64,000 nt of DNA. It comes from Macrostomum hystrix. Lineage: Eukaryota; Animalia; Platyhelminthes. The translations under genes were made by a program, and so were the position numbers. The stretch spans positions 11,842,001 to 11,906,000 of the forward strand of contig CATNEN010000003.1 in the NCBI GenBank assembly GCA_950097015.1, written 5' to 3'. The notes under the pieces are model-generated. The model saw only the letters and a list, made by a program, of their open reading frames with translations. It did not search any database and was not told the origin of the DNA. Below, piece after piece: positions 4,813-61,103 of the stretch. Within the stretch, counting starts at the first letter, position 1. Every line of letters begins with the position of its first letter.

Positions 4813-5490
4813 CAAATCCTGTTTTCCTATTTTATCGTCTATTTTATCATCCCATTCTCGCGGATAGGAACCCATCTCATTGTATTCATTCGCATGAAAT
4901 CCTGTCCTATTTAGTCTACTCGCCTGAAAATCTCTCTGAACACATTGTATCCTTTTTTCTAGTCCTATTGATTTTTTCCTGAATTAAGCGTTCTATTTTT
5001 ATTGCTGTTCTCGCAATTATGCACCACCACATAATGACCTGAAACTCTAAAACCCTATCTTTCGCTAAAGAAACAGCTTTAAAGGCACATTGTTTGTTGT
5101 CGTCACAGGTGTTCTAGTGTTTAGTTCCACTATCTGACTGGCCTTAACACACACCCACACCATATAAGACTAAAGTTCATGGAAGAACTTTTCTGTCGTA
5201 ATTTCCTGTTTCTTCGTACTCAAAAAGCACACAACGGAATCTGCATTCCAAATTAAACGATAATTCTAGTGCTGACTGCATTCAGATTAGCCAAATATGG
5301 TCATTGGTCAGTTCTATTGCATTTAATTACAATAAGTATACAAAAACCTCTGCTCCTTGTATTTTGGGTCGCGAATAACAGGAAATTGTGATTAATTTTC
5401 TAAAAAATATCTTTAGCGAATGTCTAGTCTTGCTGGAAAATCTTCAAGAAAATATAAATATTAAAAGCTTTCAATTAAACGACAGTTTAA

Positions 5491-30418: not shown

Positions 30419-31142
30419 GTTTATCTAACGATAACGCTGTGTCTAACGAAAAATCTACTTGAGCATTGCTGGAGCCAAATCAACCGGATTGAAGAGAAGC
30501 AATTAGAAATGAAAGCAAAGTTGACTACAACGGAAATGAAAAAAAGCAGTGCTTTCAAGCACTTGACAACACCTGCAACAGGTGCTATTGCTCATTAGTT
30601 AGCAATTATGCGACTCCTAGCAAACGCATACATTTTGCAAGAATTTTTCTTTTCTGTTCCAAAAACTGCGCACGTATTTGGTCTCTTGTTATCGCACAAT
30701 GATTTTTTTCAAAGAACCAGTCAAGTTTTGAGGTTTAGAGTGAGTTTTTTTCTATTTGCAGTCAAGCCTGCTGGCTGTGCCTCCTCTGATCTCTTTAGAT
30801 TGGCGGGAGAAATGGGGAAATAATGGAATGGGATAGAGAATCAATGTTGGCTAGAGCTCACATTGGAAAGGGTTGCTGAGTACAAATAAGCAGCTGGATA
30901 AATGAAACGAAACAAGCAAAGCCTGAGAAGCAGCAATAAAAAAATGCCACTCGGCACGTTTTACTTGACTTTGTTTTATCAGGCGCAAGTTGAGTATGGA
31001 CTCGGTGTGAGCTAGTGGGCGCGTGCTCAGATGAGAACTGTTTGCATTGCTCGATCAACAGTTGGTATAGCGACCTGGGCTCGTTATGGGATAAAGCTAA
31101 TTGACTTACAATTATGTTCAAATAGGACTAGGATACTAGGAT

Positions 31143-31153
31143 ATCTATCTACC

Positions 31154-31204
<51 letters not shown>

Positions 31205-31205
31205 G

Positions 31206-31236
<31 letters not shown>

Positions 31237-31237
31237 G

Positions 31238-31268
<31 letters not shown>

Positions 31269-31269
31269 G

Positions 31270-31315
<46 letters not shown>

Positions 31316-31316
31316 G

Positions 31317-31401
<85 letters not shown>

Positions 31402-31480
31402 CATCTTTCCATCTACCAATCTATCTATTTATCAATCAATCTATCTATCTATCTATCTATCTATCTATGTATGTATTTAT
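31143..31480. repeat. (TATC)n microsatellite
   Basis: Read directly. Confidence 0.95.
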
Positions 31481-31752: not shown

Positions 31753-32289
31753 AGGAAGTTGGTAAGAAGTGTTAAGCGCAAGAAAAGATTCTAGCAGCAA
31801 AAAATTCCTCACTCCAAATTACTCACTGGCTGCTTTTGAAATGTCAGAGAAAAAATTAAGTCGAAAAAATCAGGTTTGCTCACTCATTAATCAGACTTGA
31901 CACTAATACGATTGGTAATATGAAAAAACGAAGATAAAAAATGAGTGGACAGATGAATATTATGTACAATGCCTACTTCCTATGCACCTTCTATTGTAGT
32001 GGAACACTTTGAAGTTCAATTAATAGCTTACTTGGAAGGTGTGAAATATACTTTGGTTGGTAGAAGAAAAAATTTCTCCCCCTCTTTGGAAAGAAATTGA
32101 AGACTTGAAAGACGATATTGAACTCACTATTGAGCAGACGGTCTGTGAGTGACACGTGGAAGGTAATCTTGAGAGTTTGAAAATGATTAACACAGCCTCA
32201 GCCGATGAAGACTAAGTGGTAGAGAGACTGACCTGTGTCACCCTGGCATAGGGGCTTGATGTGGGACTAGCATTATTAATTTGACTTTC

Positions 32290-32580
32290 ACTGTCTCTTT
32301 CTCCCTCTCTCCCTCTCTTTACCTCTTTACCTCTCTCCCTCTCTCCCTCTCTCTCCCTCCTTCTCCCCCTCTCTCCCTCCCTCTCCCCCTCTCTCCCTCC
32401 CTCTCCTTCTCTCTCCCTCCCTCTCCTTCTCTCTCCCTCCCTCTCCCCTCTCTCTGTCTCCCTTTCTCTCAATCTTTCTCTCCCCATATTCTCCCCTCTC
32501 CCCTTGTCTCAGTCTCTCTCCACCTTCTCATTCCCCCACCTCCCGTCTCTCTCCCCTTCTCTCTCACACTCCCATTCTCA
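32290..32580. repeat. CT-rich polypyrimidine low-complexity tract
   Basis: Read directly. Confidence 0.85.
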
Positions 32581-32892: not shown

Positions 32893-33918
32893 TTGCTGGC
32901 GCCGAGTCAGCCAGGAACTCGACAGAGATGGCCTGCTCGACAGCCTCCCCAGGGAGGACGCCAATGTGCCTCTCCCACCCTGGGAGCCCAGAGCCGACAT
33001 CACCCTCGACCTCAGCCTTGCGCAACTTTGCAGTCGAAACCAACCACCAAGCCTTCGCAGCGCAGCAGCGACGGAGTACCTGGCAGAACGCGGCTCCTTC
33101 CAGAACTCAGCCTGGACGGACGGCTCGGTCCGGGGCGGAACTGCCAACGGAACCAGTGCGGCCATCGTCACCACGCCGCGCTGGGGCCGGGTGGTCACCG
33201 ACGCGGCAGGAACCATCTGCAGTAGCACGCAGGCCGAACTTCAGGCCATCCTGCTCGCCCTCCGGACCTTTATCGACACGAGCCCCGGACGCGAGCCCTC
33301 GCCTATCGACATCTTCACGGACTCTCAGGCGGCCATCCTCTCCAAAGCGAGGGGCCCCTGCTCTGGAGAACCCACGCTATCGGAAATCTGGACTACCGCC
33401 AGCCAGCTCGGGTCCTGCATCCGGCTGACCTGGGTCCCAGCCAACTGCGGCATCGAGCTCAACGAACGGGCTGACCGGGCCGCTAACCTCTGTACGGCCC
33501 ATCAGCGCGCCCGGGCGATCACCCTGTCGGCCGCCAACGCCCACCTTCGTTGGCTCAGAGCTCAACGAGACCTCGACTTCCGCCGCGGCACTTCGTGGCC
33601 TCGCCTTCCGGCGCTCCCGAGGAAGCACGAGGTCCTCATCAACCAACTGCGCGCGGGTTGCAGCGTCCTCGCAGCAGCCACGCGCCACCGTCTCGGACTG
33701 TCCGAGGACCCCGAGTGCCCGGACTGCGGGAACCCGGACACCGAGCAGCACATCCTCCGCACGTGCCCCAGAGGCGACTCGGCTCGGCCTAGTGATGGAG
33801 CCGACATCCTCACGGACACGGTGGCGGTGCTGCATCTCCTTCGCAGACTGGGGCGTCTCTGACGTCCCCGCCCCTCGCAGTTCGCTGACTTTGGGGCGCG
33901 CGGTGCAGAGAGAGAGAG
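32893..33918 (+). mobile_element. 5'-truncated non-LTR retrotransposon (I group, possibly Ingi-like): RNase H plus CCHC knuckle, (GA)n tail
   Basis: AWTDGS, QAELQA, FTDSQ, WVPANCG and NERAD RNase H motifs; CPDC...H...C knuckle; stop at 33862; AGAAGCAGAAG on both flanks. Confidence 0.88.
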
Positions 33919-33955
33919 AAGCAGAAGCAGCAGCAGCAGCAGCAGCAGAAGCAGA

Positions 33956-33989
<34 letters not shown>

Positions 33990-33998
33990 GCAGAAGCA

Positions 33999-34029
<31 letters not shown>

Positions 34030-34096
34030 AAGCAGCAGCAGCGGCAGCAGCAGCAGCAGCAGCAGAAGCAGCAACATCATCAGCAGCAGCAGCAGA

Positions 34097-34127
<31 letters not shown>

Positions 34128-34200
34128 GCAGAAGTAGCAGCAGAAGCAGCAGCAGCAGCAGCAGCAGAAGTAGCAGCAGAAGCAGCAGCAGCAGCAGCAG
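33919..34200. repeat. (GCA)n/(GAA) interrupted trinucleotide tract
   Basis: Read directly; continues at 32868-32892 on the other side of the LINE. Confidence 0.95.
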
Positions 34201-34214
34201 AGGTAACAACAACA

Positions 34215-34304
34215 GGGGGTTAGGAGACCACGTCCACGACGTGCCCCCGGACCCAGCGGTCATGCCACGACACCGGCCACCGCTGGGAGTGACTAAGAGT
34301 CTCC
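34215..34304 (+). ncRNA. HDV-like self-cleaving ribozyme
   Basis: P1 GGGGGU/GCCCCC; P2 GGAGAC/GUCUCC; P3 ACG/CGU; L3 UCCACGA; P1.1 CC/GG; P4 CCCAGCGGU/ACCGCUGGG; J4/2 ...GACUAA with C34293. Confidence 0.8.
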
Positions 34305-34407
34305 CCTTCCAGCCAGGACACGCAGACCCTGCGTGCCCTGGGGCGCCATTAGGCGCCCGCCCCCAGCTGCAGCAGCAGCGTTGAGGGCGCTGGCAAGAAG
34401 AAGAAGA
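34215..34407 (+). mobile_element. Short non-autonomous retroelement with ribozyme head and (AAG)n tail
   Basis: TSD AGAGGT(A/G)ACAACA at 34199-34211 and 34408-34420; 3' end resembles the end of the neighbouring LINE. Confidence 0.8.
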
Positions 34408-35194
34408 AGAGGTGACAACACGCAAAAATCAGTGTGGCCATTGTGAAACTCCCATGACAGTTCATTATTTCCGATAATTTAATAAATTATCCCATGGCTC
34501 CCACTAGGCTCTATTGCTCTGTATTTTTTATATTGTTGTGCAGCGTAATATTTTTATATTTGAGTGTTGAGTAATTCAAATCATGGACTGAGCTGCGGGA
34601 CAGTTGTTACATGCACATATATATAGGCTGCTATGAAAGCAGATTTCTTGTGTGACATAAAAAACCCGCCTTACCAATGTATGATATAAGAATTATAGGA
34701 CAGAAAATATAGAGAAATAATGAGGGTTAGGAAACAGAAACGCCACTTGTCCGCATATCCTCCCTGTTATTCAATCTATTCTTTAACTTCTGCAATAAGG
34801 CGCTTGTCAGCCTTCTTCCTTCCTTCCTTCCTTCCGTGTTTTGCCAGTTTCCTTATTGGCTTATCCCAAAAGCGACCCTCCCGGAAAGCCTTTCAGCGTG
34901 AACTGAGGATATAAGTATATTGAGTCTTGCAATATTTACGATATTAGTTTTAACATTTTTTACAAGATAATAATAGGCTTTTTGGAGTCAGCTATACTTT
35001 CAGAAATATTGTTTAGCTTGCTCATTTAAGCTTAGCCATATAAAGTTGTATACACTGACTGGCTATCCCATATTAACAATTTGCAGATGGGTCCATTCTC
35101 ATGCACAAAGCTTGTTTGTCAACATATGTGCTTAATCTAGAAAATAATTACGAGAAACTACCTTACTAGTATTATCATTTAGGAGAATACTAGT

Positions 35195-37175
35195 CTCCAG
35201 TGTCCCATCTCTCCCGTGTCTCATCTCTCCCGTGTCCCATCTCTCCCATGTCCCATCTCTCCCATGTCCCATCTCTCCTGTGTCTCATCTCTCCCGTGTC
35301 TCATCTCTCCCGTGTCTCATCTCTCCCGTGTCTCATCTCTCCCGTGTCTCATCTCTCCCGTGTCTCATCTCTCCCGTGTCTCATCTCTCCCGTGTCTCAT
35401 CTCTCCCCTGTCTCATCTCTCCCGTGTCTCATCTCTCCCGTGTCTCATCTCTCCCGTGTCTCATCTCTCCCGTGTCTCATCTCTCCCGTGTCTCATCTCT
35501 CCCGTGTCTCATCTCTCCCGTGTCCCATCTCTCCCGTGTCCCATCTCTCCCGTGTCTCATCTCTCCCGTGTCTCATCTCTCCCGTGTCTCATCTCTCCCG
35601 TGTCTCATCTCTCCCGTGTCTCATCTCTCCCGTGTCTCATCTCTCCCGTGTCTCATCTCTCCCGTGTCTCATCTCTCCCGTGTCTCATCTCTCCCGTGTC
35701 TCATCTCTCCCGTGTCCCATCTCTCCCGTGTCCCATCTCTCCCGTGTCTCATCTCTCCCGTGTCTCATCTCTCCCGTGTCTCATCTCTCCCGTGTCTCAT
35801 CTCTCCCGTGTCTCATCTCTCCCGTGTCTCATCTCTCCCGTGTCTCATCTCTCCCGTGTCTCATCTCTCCCGTGTCTCATCTCTCCCCTGTCTCATCTCT
35901 CCCGTGTCCCATCTCTCCCGTGTCTCATCTCTCCCGTGTCTCATCTCTCCCGTGTTTCATCCCTCCCGTGTCTCATCTCTCCCGTGTCTCATCTCTCCCG
36001 TGTCTCATCTCTCCCGTGACTCATCTCTCCCGTGTCTCATCTCTCCCGTGTCTCATCTCTCCCGTGTCTCATCTCTCCCGTGTCCCATCTCTCCCGTGTC
36101 CCATCTCTCCCGTGTCTCATCTCTCCCGTGTCTCATCTCTCCCGTGTCTCATCTCTCCCGTGTCTCATCTCTCCCGTGTCTCATCTCTCCCGTGTCTCAT
36201 CTCTCCCGTGTCTCATCTCTCCCGTGCCTCATCTCTCCCGTGTCTCATCTCTCCCGTGTCCCATCTCTCCCGTGTCTCATCTCTCCCGTGTCTCATCTCT
36301 CCCGTGTCTCATCTCTCCCGTGTCTCATCTCTCCCGTGTCTCATCTCTCCCGTATCTCATCTCTCCCGTGTCTCATCTCTGCCCTCTCTCATCTCTCCCG
36401 TGTCTCATCTCTCCCGTGTCTCATCTCTCCCGTGTCTCATCTCTCCCGTGTCTCATCTCTCCCGTGTCTCATCTCTCCCGTGTCTCATCTCTGCCCTCTC
36501 TCATCTCTCCCGTGTCTCATCTCTCCCGTGTCTCATCTCTCCCGTGTCTCATCTCTCCCGTGTCTCATCTCTCCCGTGTCTCATCTCGCCCGTGTCTCAT
36601 CTCTCCCGTGTCTCATCTCTCCCGTGTCTCATCTCTCCCGTGTCCCATCTCTCCCGTGTCTCATCTCTCCCGTGTCTCATCTCTCCCGTGTCTCATCTCT
36701 CCTGTGTCTCATCTATCGCGTGTCTCATCTCTCCCGTGTCTCATCTCTCCCGTGTCTCATCTCTCCCGTGTCTCATCTCTCCCGTGTTTCATCTCTCCCG
36801 TGTCTCATCTCTCCCGTGTCTCATCTCTCCCGTGTCTCATCTCTCCCGTGTCTCATCTCTCCCGTATCTCATCTCTCCCGTATCTCATCTCTCCCGTGTC
36901 TCATCTCTCCCGTGTCTCATCTCTCCCGTGTCTCATCTCTCCCGTGTCTCATCTCTCCCGTGTCTCATCTCTCCCGTGTCTCATCTCATCTCTCCCGTGT
37001 CTCATCTCTCCCGTGTCTCATCTCTCCCGTGTCTCATCTCTCCCGTGTCTCATCTCTCCCGTGTCTCATCTCTCCCGTGTCTCATCTCTCCCGTGTCTCA
37101 TCTCTCCCGTGTCTCATCTCTCCCGTGTCTCATCTCTCCCGTGTCTCATCTCTCCCGTGTCTCATCTCCCCAGTG
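35195..37175. repeat. 16-bp minisatellite CATCTCTCCCGTGTCT, ~2 kb
   Basis: Highly homogeneous tandem array. Confidence 0.97.
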
Positions 37176-37894
37176 TGTTTTCTTTCCTGTATTTCACACA
37201 TTTTTTGTCTTATCCAAAAATTGATCCAATATATTATCGCTTTTTAAGGAAAGCTTTTTTCAAAATTAAAGTAAACCAACTGTGTTAAAAAGTTTTTGTT
37301 ACCTGTAATAAGTAATATTATAAACCAGTGCAGGTGCTATATCTATTACATCGGAGGTAAAATCCCAAATCACCAACTGGCCGTCGAACACTCGGCCCCC
37401 TTTTTAGCCTCTTTAATTGGATTCGATCGGAAAATTTCTTGAGCGCAAGTGAAGCGTTGAGAAAATCTAAGAAAAAGAGAGATTTCTTTAACTGAGAGCA
37501 CAGGTATAGTAGTGTGCTCACTCTGACTGAGTTAATTAAGTTTTACGCTCAACTCTCAGCACACCTGAAAATAATTCTCCACTATTTCTCTCTCCTCATC
37601 TCCTCTCAGCCTGACAGTGTCACATGAGTTCACTCTATAGGTAAAGTACTCAATCTTGTTTTTGCTTTTCAAGGAATTCTTGTAATAGATCTTAGCAGAA
37701 TTCACTGTCAGAAAACTCTTAAACAGGCATCGTATATCTTCTTGACAGGTGATTCCAAGCTACGTTAATGTGTTTGGAAAAATTCTATATAGAAACTATC
37801 CATTCATTGACACCTGTCTTTTGCTTTTTAAAGGATTAATTGATTTTTAGGAAACTCTAATATTTACTAAAGTACTCGCAAATTGAGAATATCA

Positions 37895-51273: not shown

Positions 51274-52341
51274 ATGTTTAACCGGTTCGTGTTTGGCGGC
51301 CCCCAAATGCAGTCTTCCACCTTTGAGACCACTTATCGCTGCTACTCAGCCAGCATGTTCTCTGGCCAGGACAAGGTGCGTAGGGAGGCGGAGACTGGCG
51401 GCAAGATCATCATGCCACAGTCGGCGCTGGAAACTCTGGTCCAGCTGCAAATCCAGTACCCGATGATATTTCGGCTGGCTAATCCGAAGACTAAGAAATT
51501 CTCGCACGCTGGCGTGATTGAATTCACAGCCGAGGAAGGTCGGGTCTATGTGCCCTACTGGATCATGCAGAATCTGCTGCTTAGCGAAGGCGACATGCTG
51601 ACTGTGTTGAATGTCTCATTGCCCAAGGCCACCTACGCTAAATTCCAGCCTCAGAATGTAAATTTCTTGGACATCTCAAATCCCAAGGCTGTGCTGGAGA
51701 ATGAGCTGAGAAAGTTTGCCTGTCTGAGCACTGGTGACATCATTGTGCTGCACTATAACAACAAGGAGTACGAGCTGCTGGTACAGGAGCTCAAGCCGGA
51801 GAACAGTGTCACCATCATAGAGTGCGACGTAAATGTTGAGTTCGACAAACCGGTTGGCTACGAGGAGAGCACGGTGCCTAAGTCTGCTTCTCAGGCTAGC
51901 CTACCAGCTGGTCTCAGTGGCTCCGTGGACGGTCCGACCTGCTCTGCTGACCTGAGCGATTTGAGTCACCAGCCGGTGATTCCTGAGCAGAGCGCGGCTA
52001 ACGCCTTTCCCGGAGCAGGACAGCGCCTTGACGGCAAGGCCAAATCCGCCCAGAAGGCTGCCGCGTTCTCCACTGATGGACCAGCAGCTGGCAGTTCGTC
52101 AGCTGGCTTGACCTCGGTAGACTCGTCCTCCTCCTTGAGCAGCTATGCTCAGCAGCAGCAGCAGCAGCGTGGAGTTCCAAATTACGACTATCGACCTGGC
52201 GAGCTACACTTTATTCGCCAATTCAACCGAAGCAACAACGCAGCATCGGCTGCTGACGGTGGCGACAATGGCGGCTCATTCAAAGCGTTTGATGGCGCCG
52301 GCGTGCGTTTGAAGACTGCTCGCACAGCCAAGGCGCGATAG
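51274..52341 (+). CDS. UFD1: Ubiquitin fusion degradation protein 1, intronless CDS
   Basis: GGKIIMPQSAL, YPMIF, HAGVIEFTAEEG, FLDISNPKAVLE, RGVPNYDY, and SHP boxes FPGAGQRL and FDGAGVRL. Confidence 0.97.
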   Translation: MFNRFVFGGPQMQSSTFETTYRCYSASMFSGQDKVRREAETGGKIIMPQSALETLVQLQIQYPMIFRLANPKTKKFSHAGVIEFTAEEGRVYVPYWIMQNLLLSEGDMLTVLNVSLPKATYAKFQPQNVNFLDISNPKAVLENELRKFACLSTGDIIVLHYNNKEYELLVQELKPENSVTIIECDVNVEFDKPVGYEESTVPKSASQASLPAGLSGSVDGPTCSADLSDLSHQPVIPEQSAANAFPGAGQRLDGKAKSAQKAAAFSTDGPAAGSSSAGLTSVDSSSSLSSYAQQQQQQRGVPNYDYRPGELHFIRQFNRSNNAASAADGGDNGGSFKAFDGAGVRLKTARTAKAR

Positions 52342-58451: not shown

Positions 58452-59242
58452 CTTGTCTTTAAAATCAACATGGATTTTAAGAGGATTGCGCAGCATCAGC
58501 AGCAGCCGGCGCAGACGATGATAGCGGGTCGAGCTACTCGTCTTCCAAATCTACAAGAGGTTGGTGACATGGTGTTCAAAAGAACTTCGCAGCATCCGTA
58601 TCAGCAGCAGCAGCAGCAGCAGCAGCAGGCTCAGCGGGTTGTAAATCATGCTCCAGTTGAATACTCAGGCAAAGAGCACTATGCTTCGGTCTCAGATGTG
58701 GAAAGCGGATCGAGCTGCACAGACACCGCTCCGCAAGCATCCATGCAGGTAGGCGCTAACTCATATTTGTAAAGTTTTAACCAGAACGAAAACGAAATAA
58801 ATTTAGAAGATTATATTTTCAAAAGCACTTCTGTAAATCCTAACCTCGGAAAAATGCCTTCCCAGTCCTGGCGCACACAGTGGCAAACGGGCATGCATGC
58901 TAATTGTCGAGTTAGTCGTCTTCAAAAGCAACAGGACGTCGGTGCCTTTGAGTTTCAGAGTCCCGACATGACAGGAGACAACAATCGACCGCGCTGGAAG
59001 CAGCAGGAGCTGAGGCAGCCAGCGCAGAGGATGATGCCGGGCCGAGCCAGTCATCTTCAAAGTCAACAAGAGCTCGGTGACACGGAGTTCCAGAGTCCCG
59101 AAAGCACAGAAAACAACGGACGACTACGCCGACAGCAACAGCAGCAGAAGCAGCAGCAGCCGGCACAGACGATGATGGCGCGCCGAGGGACTCGTTTTCA
59201 AAACCAAAAAGAGGTCGATGACATGGAGTTCAAAAGGATGGC

Positions 59243-59295
<53 letters not shown>

Positions 59296-61103
59296 CTCAG
59301 CGGGTTGTAAATCATGCTCCAGTTGAATGCTCAGGCAAAGAGCGGTATGCTTCGGCCTCAGATGTGGACAGCGGATCGAGCTGCACAGACACCGCTCCGC
59401 AAGCATCCATGAAGGTGGGCGCTACTCATATTTGGGAAGAAAATATATTTGGCAGCTGCGTGCTGCCCTTCTAAATACATTTTGAAGTGTTGTACCGGTC
59501 GTCCTGCTAACAATGCGGGATCCGGCGAACTCCAATATGAAGTCCAAGATTTCTAGGTAGTGTAGTAGTAGCGCTGCCACCAGGGCGTCAGGACTTCTGC
59601 CTTCGGTAAGGTGAAGGATCCTTGGCCCGAAAAAGAAGAAGTCACGAAGTCTCGAGAAGCACACAGTGCAGAGTTTCAGTTGCAATTACAGGCTGTCAGT
59701 GTCCTGCGTAGCTCGGATGGTGGGGTGGAAGGCTAAGTTAGTTTCGGGACTTAGCCAGAACTGAGCTTACGAGCAGTCACATGCAGAGACTGAAGTAGGA
59801 AACTTAGACACTCGATGGCACTGACAAGAGAGACTGAAATAAGTCAGAGAAAACGTTAATGACAGGAAGTGGAAAGGTTGAGCCGGGAGAAAGGGATGAG
59901 GACCAGAGGAGCGGGGAGCTTTCTTTTATAGGCAGGGGCCTCCCATAGGGTCAGTGCAGAGTTAGAAAACACGTGATGGAATCACGTGGTTTCTAAAAAT
60001 AGCAACTGACGTCAGTGGCGCCAGAAACGTCACTCCTACGTAGGTTCCTGTCCCATAATCAAAGCCCCAAGTGCAGTAAACATGTTTACTTGCACTTTAA
60101 AAGACAAAGAGAGAGGCCAGTCGCATGAGGAGAATCACGCGCTGACTGAGTGCAGACAACCACACACAAAGAAAAGGACAAGGGACAACAAAGCCAGCGC
60201 GGGACAAAGAGGTGATGACTCATCCCTGGGAGGAAGAGACAGCACACTCAAAGTACAGGCGCGGCCGGGAAGGGAGGGACAGAGAGGGACAGACCAGACA
60301 ACGCCAGAGAGGGCGGGCCGGGCAGCCACTCAATGCTAGCAAAAAGGGGGCACCTAAGCTACCTTGCAGGTGGGGCTACTGACAGCTAGTGAGACACCAA
60401 TAGGCCCCTAAGCAGTGGCTCACTACAGAAGATTTTAGTTTCTTTAACTTATATATAAGGAGTCTTTATAGTTACAATGTCATTTGCAAACACAAACCTC
60501 CGAAAAATTCATTCAAAGCCTTGGCGCACGCAGCGACAAGTAATGCACGCCAGCAGCCGAACTTGTCGCCTTCAAAAGCAACCAGACGTCGGTGCCATCA
60601 AGTTTCGGAGTCCCGACATGACAGGAGACAACGGTCGACCGCGTCGGCAGCAACAGCAGCAGCAGGCCGCGAAGACGATAATGTCAGGCCGAGCCAGTCT
60701 TCCTCGAAATCAACAAGAAGTCGGTGCCACGGAGTTCCAGAGTCCCGACATGACAGCAAAGACTGGTCGACCAGGCAGGAAGCAGCAGCCGCAGCAGCAG
60801 CAGCAGAAAGCGCAGACGTTGATGGCGGGCGAACAGCAGATACAACAGCAGCCGCAGCAGCACTACAGCAGTTGCAGCAATGATTGCCAACTGGTGGTTG
60901 TCAACCGGTTAAATCTAGTTCTTGAACTGGTCGGCTGCGGCAAGTGTGAGTACTGCGAATCTAACTCGTCCTGCTGCCTAACCGCCGGACTGTCTGCGAG
61001 GCAAGCTGATCAACAACTGCCTGAGCAGCCGCAGGTCATTCGCGCTGTCTTGCCTTGTGGAGCCAGCTCGCAACAGATGGGCCAGTCTAACCGTCGAGTT
61101 TGA
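58452..61103 (+). CDS. Unknown Q-rich repetitive protein; candidate exons 58452-58748, 58866-59414, 60519-61103
   Basis: Homologous phase-0 exons with repeated VG.EFQSPD modules and shared SGSSCTDTAPQASM ends; AATAAA near 61300. Confidence 0.5.
59488..60427 (-). mobile_element. Solo LTR (940 bp)
   Basis: TGT...ACA termini; 4-bp TSD GAAG (59484-59487 and 60428-60431); minus-strand TATAAAAG near 59925; empty site visible in the paralogous intron near 58800. Confidence 0.8.

Follow-up and report, generated by a model that had tools for sequence, protein, structure and literature searches.

Anatomy of the element

The DNA analysed here, a 64-kb stretch of the Macrostomum hystrix genome that we refer to as the window, contains a GC-rich retroelement of 195 bp at positions 34215–34409, as read from the sequence. 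The element sits at one end of a CAG tract whose other end is occupied by a 5'-truncated LINE (starting at 32893), and this LINE is flanked on both sides by CAG/AAG repeats. The features of the locus are as follows.

32893–33910, + strand: 5'-truncated related LINE, from RNase H to a CCHC C-terminus, with its stop at about 33860 (tblastn, Pfam RNase_H)
33920–34198, + strand: (CAG)n microsatellite of about 94 units (TRF, sequence)
34199–34211, + strand: left target-site duplication (TSD), 13 nt, matching 34408–34420 at 12/13 positions
34212–34214, + strand: ACA, three additional bases that separate the TSD from the first base common to all other copies (5' junction)
34215–34304, + strand: HDV-like ribozyme fold (descriptor match, MFE for the nested part, covariation in relatives)
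34305–34326, + strand: LINE 5'UTR remnant, where the other copies have 92 more nt
near 34326/34327, + strand: internal deletion junction (comparison with other copies)
34329–34352, + strand: 3'-terminal 7 codons of the parent ORF (L R A L G R H), followed by the stop (compared with the C-termini of LINE-B, LINE-A and the window LINE)
34350–34352, + strand: relic stop TAG; the C-termini of relatives end in ...LGRL-stop
34341–34358, + strand: 7-bp hairpin around the stop codon (fold; counterpart hairpins in related LINEs)
34353–34394, + strand: 3'UTR, matching the 3' end of LINE-B (L010)
34395–34409, + strand: (AAG)5 tail, read directly; an AAG tail is also present on the other copies and on LINE-B
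34408–34420, + strand: right TSD, overlapping the last AG of the AAG tail

The GC content of the element is 0.60–0.69 as against 0.35 in the surrounding host DNA, and a single mismatch (A/G at position 7) separates the two TSDs. A preliminary description of this DNA had reported a GC-rich element of about 195 bp with a near-perfect 13-bp TSD, three extra nucleotides on the left and an (AAG)n end, all of which can be read directly. A perfect 7-bp hairpin (CACGCAG/CUGCGUG, 34319–34335), with one arm from the 5' leader and the other from the ORF end, spans the deletion junction that is private to the window copy, and hints at a microhomology or template-switch origin of this deletion.

An HDV-like fold at the first base

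At 34215–34304 a nested double pseudoknot is complete in the order P1-P2-P3-L3-P3'-P1'-P1.1-P4-J4/2-P2', with the following parts.

34215–34220 with 34243–34248, + strand: P1, 6 bp (5 G-C plus U.G)
34223–34228 with 34299–34304, + strand: P2, 6 Watson-Crick pairs
34230–34232 with 34240–34242, + strand: P3 (sequence)
34233–34239, + strand: L3, UCCACGA (sequence)
C34234–34235 with G34249–34250, + strand: P1.1 (sequence)
34252–34260 with 34279–34287, + strand: P4, 9 bp (sequence)
34288–34298, + strand: J4/2, carrying C34293 followed by UAA

The core nucleotides of such a ribozyme are in place, namely G34215 at +1, UCCACGA in L3, GG at 34249–34250 and C34293-UAA; the HDV counterpart of the J4/2 motif is C75-G-A-A. 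The predicted cut lies 5' of G34215, which is the first base of the element. At this position the window copy has a G34215-C34248 pair and so lacks a G.U wobble closing P1, the cleavage-site pair being G.U in the other, approximately 290-bp copies described below and in LINE families A, C and D, and G-C in families E and F. Nested MFE folding recovers P1, P3 and P4 (z = -2.75), P2 being a pseudoknot and thus outside its reach. Every pairing listed in the preliminary description, from P1 through the 9-bp P4 to J4/2 with C34293, exists in the sequence, including its six-pair P1, and the cleavage point predicted there does fall on the element start, the base homologous to G34215 being also where all other full copies begin.

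That description had also proposed an HDV descriptor search. The descriptor used here demands G at +1, a P1 of 6–7 bp, a P2 of 5–8 bp, a P3 of 3 bp, a CC in L3 that pairs to the GG following P1, and a C in J4/2, and its match at 34215 is the only one on the + strand of the window. Counting both strands, the null rate is 0.04 matches per 64 kb in window-like Markov sequence and 0.5 per 64 kb in GC-rich LINE-like sequence, or about 4e-6 per position in the worst case, and because these rates are low a match on the exact boundary base is far beyond chance. No Rfam model matched the window copy at the gathering score or at E<=10. Two sub-threshold Rfam hits fall exactly on predicted LINE heads, CPEB3_ribozyme (22 bits) at L049:1238-1271 and drz-agam-1 (21.6 bits) at L037:1470-1542.

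A second descriptor match in the window, on the minus strand at 58935–59025 with a 7-bp P1 and a 5-bp P2, sits in a locally duplicated segment that has a tandem paralogue at about 60495–60830. This match has no LINE context, lacks the C(G/U)AA motif, and lacks the G that is conserved in L3 of HDV-like ribozymes (PMC3774820); we judge it probably to be a chance match and rejected it as a ribozyme.

Copies elsewhere in the genome

In the genome from which the window comes (220 Mb, 42 contigs), the short-element family was found at five other loci, as two fragments and three full copies of about 290 bp:

C33:1826564-1826839: full copy of about 290 bp (genome search)
C1:16677620-895: full copy of about 290 bp (genome search)
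C8:2325482-760: full copy of about 290 bp (genome search)

All of the full copies start at the base homologous to G34215 and have unrelated upstream flanks, and thus the other copies with a shared 5' boundary, for which the preliminary description had proposed to look, do exist. The 290-bp copies are 97–99% identical to one another and have one common internal junction, which argues that the deleted form itself multiplied. Both the window copy and L003 have TSDs, CAGCAGCAGT being duplicated at either end of the L003 copy; the tails are (AAG)n and the insertion sites are CAG repeats.

The window copy is 93–96% identical to the 290-bp copies and has 92 nt fewer, the missing segment lying between 34326 and 34327. 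The genome search found no second copy with this junction, so that the 195-bp variant is single-copy. At three sites, the last base of L3, J4/2 (GACUAA in the window copy as against AACCAA) and the 3'UTR, the window copy sides with two LINE relatives, LINE-B and LINE-A, against the 290-bp copies, and because of this agreement it does not appear to be their recent descendant. Judging from these comparisons, the window copy is either an older lineage or an independent deletion derivative, and it is probably a fossil.

Derivation from an APE-RT-RNase H LINE

Both ends of the short element have counterparts in LINEs of the same genome. Its first 37 nt share 92% identity with the head of LINE-A (e.g. 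L013:780), an autonomous LINE of which we find six copies with heads, five of them starting at the same G. The intact ORFs of LINE-A (1412–1499 aa) have Exo_endo_phos (APE), RVT_1 and RNase_H domains and a C-terminus of the CCHC type. At the 3' end, 131 nt of the short element align at 82% identity with the end of LINE-B (L010), from the final ORF codons and the stop through the 3'UTR into the (AAG)n tail, and for the window copy the identity to the LINE-B 3' end reaches 100% over 51 nt. Intact LINE-A copies are more distant from the short element, with 3'UTRs about 70–77% similar. LINE-B is the closest parent and was seen solely as a 5'-truncated copy; a full-length parent with a P4-bearing head was not found in the assembly, which makes present-day mobility doubtful. 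The truncated LINE in the window (32893–33910) is 45% identical to the C-terminal part of LINE-A (tblastn).

From its homologies the short element is an internally deleted derivative, of the SIDE/NARTc type, of an APE-RT-RNase H LINE, from which it has kept the ribozyme, a leader of approximately 20–70 nt, the last codons, the stop-codon hairpin, the 3'UTR and the tail. It retains the fold although it has no ORF to translate. Hairpins that have the stop codon in their loop or 3' arm, with other stem sequences, are present in LINE-A (L013, at about 693–716 and 5122–5145) and in the window LINE (at about 33851–33872). The hairpin, whose conservation was traced in two LINE-A copies, in the window LINE and in the short elements, is a likely candidate for the element that the reverse transcriptase recognises.

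Several other properties of these LINEs were observed. The LINE-B copy at L010 has no stop-codon hairpin, and its last 46–52 nt, comprising the end of the 3'UTR and the AAG tail, are in tandem duplicate on the minus strand (approximately 1501–1600; G000:C8:2799278-2799360). At L013:600-835 two LINEs lie head to tail, such that the GAAA/GAA-rich tail of one adjoins the first ribozyme G of the next, an arrangement that would set the downstream RNA free through read-through and self-cleavage. Already at the first ribozyme bases the LINE reading frames are open (L013:782-1180 and the heads at L049, L028, L053 and L063), with no AUG ahead of the endonuclease domain in family A, and 36–78 codons into these frames there is a motif resembling the ubiquitin C-terminus, V-L/M-R-L/I-R-G-G (at about nt 890–907 in L013), which in family D takes the form LHLVLRLRGG. 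A literature text search returned no paper pairing LRLRGG with a retrotransposon.

HDV-like heads of related LINE families

Apart from the short element, five LINE families have an HDV-like head that begins at their first base, as found with the descriptor or by a manual parse confirmed with a relaxed descriptor. Copies with different flanks provide an independent 5' boundary for families A, D and F, and the boundary of families C and E is that of one locus each.

Family A, L013:780-833: 54 nt, without P4
Family C, L028:1486-1539: 54 nt, without P4
Family D: 7-bp P4
Family E: 7-bp P1, and 5-bp P4 with a GCAA loop
Family F: 42-nt insert in J1/2

In the P4-less heads of families A and C there are 12 nt from P1.1 to P2', with a conserved CUAACG just before P2'; the short element has a 36-nt P4 hairpin where these heads have none, so that one genome holds a natural pair with P4 present and absent. 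Across the heads, L3 (U[C/U]CACGN) and J4/2 (C[G/U]AA) are conserved while the helix sequences differ: there are five P2 sequences and four P3 variants, pair 5 of P1 is G-C, G.U or A-U, and P1.1 is CC/GG or UC/GA. The table of pairs across families was derived with the descriptor and is therefore paired by construction, and circular, and it is the gap-free alignments that provide independent evidence. Alignment of whole ribozymes with MAFFT misaligned the variable P4, J1/2 and P2', so that pairs were counted in gap-free subsets alone. When the 36-nt 5' halves of five variants are aligned without gaps, pairing in P1, P3 and P1.1 reaches 100% and includes 4 compensatory pairs, a result equalled in 1/500 shuffles, and slid controls are 25–55% paired with none compensatory. 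Between families A and C, compared over 54 nt, P2 stays paired with 4/6 pairs changed on both sides. Covariation, another check proposed in the preliminary description, is thus seen in the related LINE heads, and the compensatory changes, consistent across alignments of few sequences, suggest that the fold is under selection.

With the relaxed descriptor, no credible HDV head was found at twenty more distant LINE loci (L071–L090, approximately 30–35% APE identity). In a further family, G (L063:1208-1325; L062, minus strand), about 50 nt precede a series of L3, P3, P1.1, P4, J4/2 and P2 in HDV order; a convincing 5' strand of P1 was not found at the first bases of L063 or L062.

Target sites

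Among 19 independent insertions (loci L002–L063 and the window), 12 have at least 3 sense CAG/CAA units within 40 nt upstream, as against a background of 1.3%, and the antisense repeat is found at none (0/19). This preference for CAG/CAA in a fixed orientation points to a microsatellite-targeting group of AP-endonuclease LINEs.

Interpretation

Because of the features described above, we propose, with a probability of roughly 0.8, that 34215–34409 is a non-autonomous element that arose by internal deletion from an APE-RT-RNase H LINE with (CAG)n targets and kept both of the RNA ends it needs. In the mechanism that we infer, the element would be transcribed as part of a longer RNA, in which the folded ribozyme head would cleave on the 5' side of G34215, thereby producing a 5'-OH and setting the first base of the element. 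The protein of the parent LINE would then bind in trans to the 3' stop-codon hairpin, 3'UTR and (AAG)n tail, a CAG-repeat target would be nicked, and target-primed reverse transcription would run to the terminal G. The expected outcome would be insertions that start at G1, with few extra bases and with TSDs of 10–13 bp. Read-through transcription, self-cleavage and trans-mobilisation are the steps of this scheme that we deduce rather than read from the DNA.

A different origin of the shared 5' end is that it marks the start of transcription, self-cleavage being weak or absent. The two functions can coincide, as the first 77 nt of L1Tc are promoter and ribozyme at once (PMC3383444), and it fits this explanation that the LINE ORFs are already open at the start of the head and that family A has no AUG before its endonuclease domain. 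We nevertheless consider it unlikely, since a DNA promoter does not require covarying helices that include the P2 and P1.1 pseudoknots, since the catalytic-core motifs of L3 and J4/2 are conserved, and since the short element keeps the fold with no ORF to translate. Far less credit is due to a fortuitous likeness to HDV in GC-rich DNA, notwithstanding that about 0.5 descriptor matches per 64 kb occur in such sequence and that the unsupported match at 59025 on the minus strand is probably of this kind: the match coincides with the boundary base itself both in the short family and in three LINE families (A, D and F) whose 5' end is fixed by copies, compensatory changes are present, and the copy and covariation data effectively refute chance. 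It is also highly improbable that the element is a true SINE, transcribed by Pol III from a head derived from a small RNA, as its short length and simple-repeat tail might suggest. Both ends are derived from a LINE, down to ORF codons and a stop codon; in the short element ARAGORN found no tRNA and Rfam no similarity to 5S, 7SL, tRNA or snRNA, and because there is no tRNA-, 5S- or 7SL-like head the element does not, strictly speaking, qualify as a SINE. A composite or Pol III SINE identity was dropped on these grounds. The preliminary description had spoken of a SINE-like family without a Pol III promoter, of which the family and the missing small-RNA head hold up and the SINE affiliation gives way to the LINE-derived ends.

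A separate question concerns the window copy alone, and either answer is compatible with the derivation of the family from a LINE. This copy could be an inert fossil with a dead ribozyme, a normal 290-bp copy that suffered a deletion after insertion and was never mobile at 195 bp. Such an account has some force, although we would not bet on it: the copy is single, it has a G-C cleavage-site pair and an extra deletion, it is 93–96% identical to the other copies, and its retained segments are subsets of the two segments of the 290-bp element. Against it stands the agreement of the window copy with LINE-B and LINE-A at the last L3 base, at GACUAA in J4/2 and in the 3'UTR. More tentatively, the window copy may have arisen from the same parent by a second deletion, independent of the first, which we regard as possible and rather doubtful. 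If so, a head of about 110 nt (ribozyme and short leader) and a 3' end of about 70 nt (stop-codon hairpin, 3'UTR and AAG tail) would be sufficient cis-elements for mobilisation by an AP-endonuclease LINE specific to CAG repeats.

Comparison with known systems

The architecture has precedents, and those named in the preliminary description (R2, RTE, Ingi/L1Tc and the short trypanosome derivatives) are borne out by the same architecture in PMC3414825, PMC3185411, PMC4035085 and PMC3774820. In the SIDEs (short internally deleted elements) of Drosophila R2, an internal deletion has brought a 5' HDV-like ribozyme next to the LINE 3' end (PMC3414825). The short element resembles these in being non-autonomous, in combining a ribozyme, here predicted, with a 3' end that the RT is likely to recognise, in using the target site of its parent and in having variable 5' junctions. 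It differs in that its parent has an AP endonuclease and RNase H whereas R2 has a restriction-like endonuclease, and in that it resides in (CAG)n microsatellites of a flatworm rather than in 28S rDNA.

Within the L1Tc/ingi clade, the ribozymes of NARTc, RIME and NARTco cleave in vitro, just upstream of the first base (PMC3185411, PMC4035085). Together with the SIDERs, these are non-coding, truncated versions of single-ORF APE-RT-RNase H LINEs that keep a 5' HDV-like ribozyme (PMC3185411, PMC3383444, PMC4035085), as the short element appears to be. Unlike NARTc, RIME and the SIDERs, it has no sequence similarity to Pr77, and it has an animal host, CAG-repeat targets and an (AAG)n tail. For the clade of the LINEs described here both Ingi and LOA-like are candidates.

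HDV-like ribozymes have further been reported to begin R4, Dong, Baggins, RTE and L1Tc elements (PMC3774820), with which the present heads share the nested double pseudoknot and cleavage, here predicted, at the first base; Dong is likewise microsatellite-specific. The heads described here belong to other LINE families, most have a P1 of 6 bp, and sister families differ in P4. Peripheral domains in J1/2 have been noted in HDV-like ribozymes (10.1101/2023.06.13.544163; PMC4908430). Minimal HDV-like ribozymes without P4, and theta ribozymes, are covered in 10.1101/2023.06.13.544163, citing Riccitelli 2014. The 54-nt heads of families A and C are like the minimal drz in having no P4. The minimal and theta ribozymes of that source come from metagenomes or phages and have roles that are unknown or tRNA-linked; the window element has a 9-bp P4.

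What is new is thus the host lineage, the LINE family and the preference for CAG repeats; the architecture itself is already known, and the element leaves the known mechanism unchanged. To the ribozyme-processed LINE derivatives with internal deletions of Drosophila R2 and trypanosomatid L1Tc/ingi it adds one from a free-living flatworm lineage, and an element this small delimits the cis-sequences that such a LINE needs. The heads of this one genome, which are P4-less, P4-bearing or provided with a long J1/2, form a ready covariation and structure-function set for HDV-like ribozymes. If sister ribozymes of one genome have indeed gained or lost P4 naturally, as heads of 54 nt and 90 nt would indicate, minimal HDV-like ribozymes would have their first assigned role in an animal retrotransposon.

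Other features of the window

Upstream of the LINE fragment, at 31140–31480 and 32280–32560, there are a long (TATC)n microsatellite and a low-complexity tract rich in CT. Positions 35194–37176 are occupied by a 16-bp minisatellite (about 124 copies, 96% matches), which is open in all three forward frames. The window also contains a UFD1 gene (51274–52341), whose product places the host among the macrostomid flatworms: it is 77% identical to the Macrostomum lignano protein, with the next best matches at about 47%.
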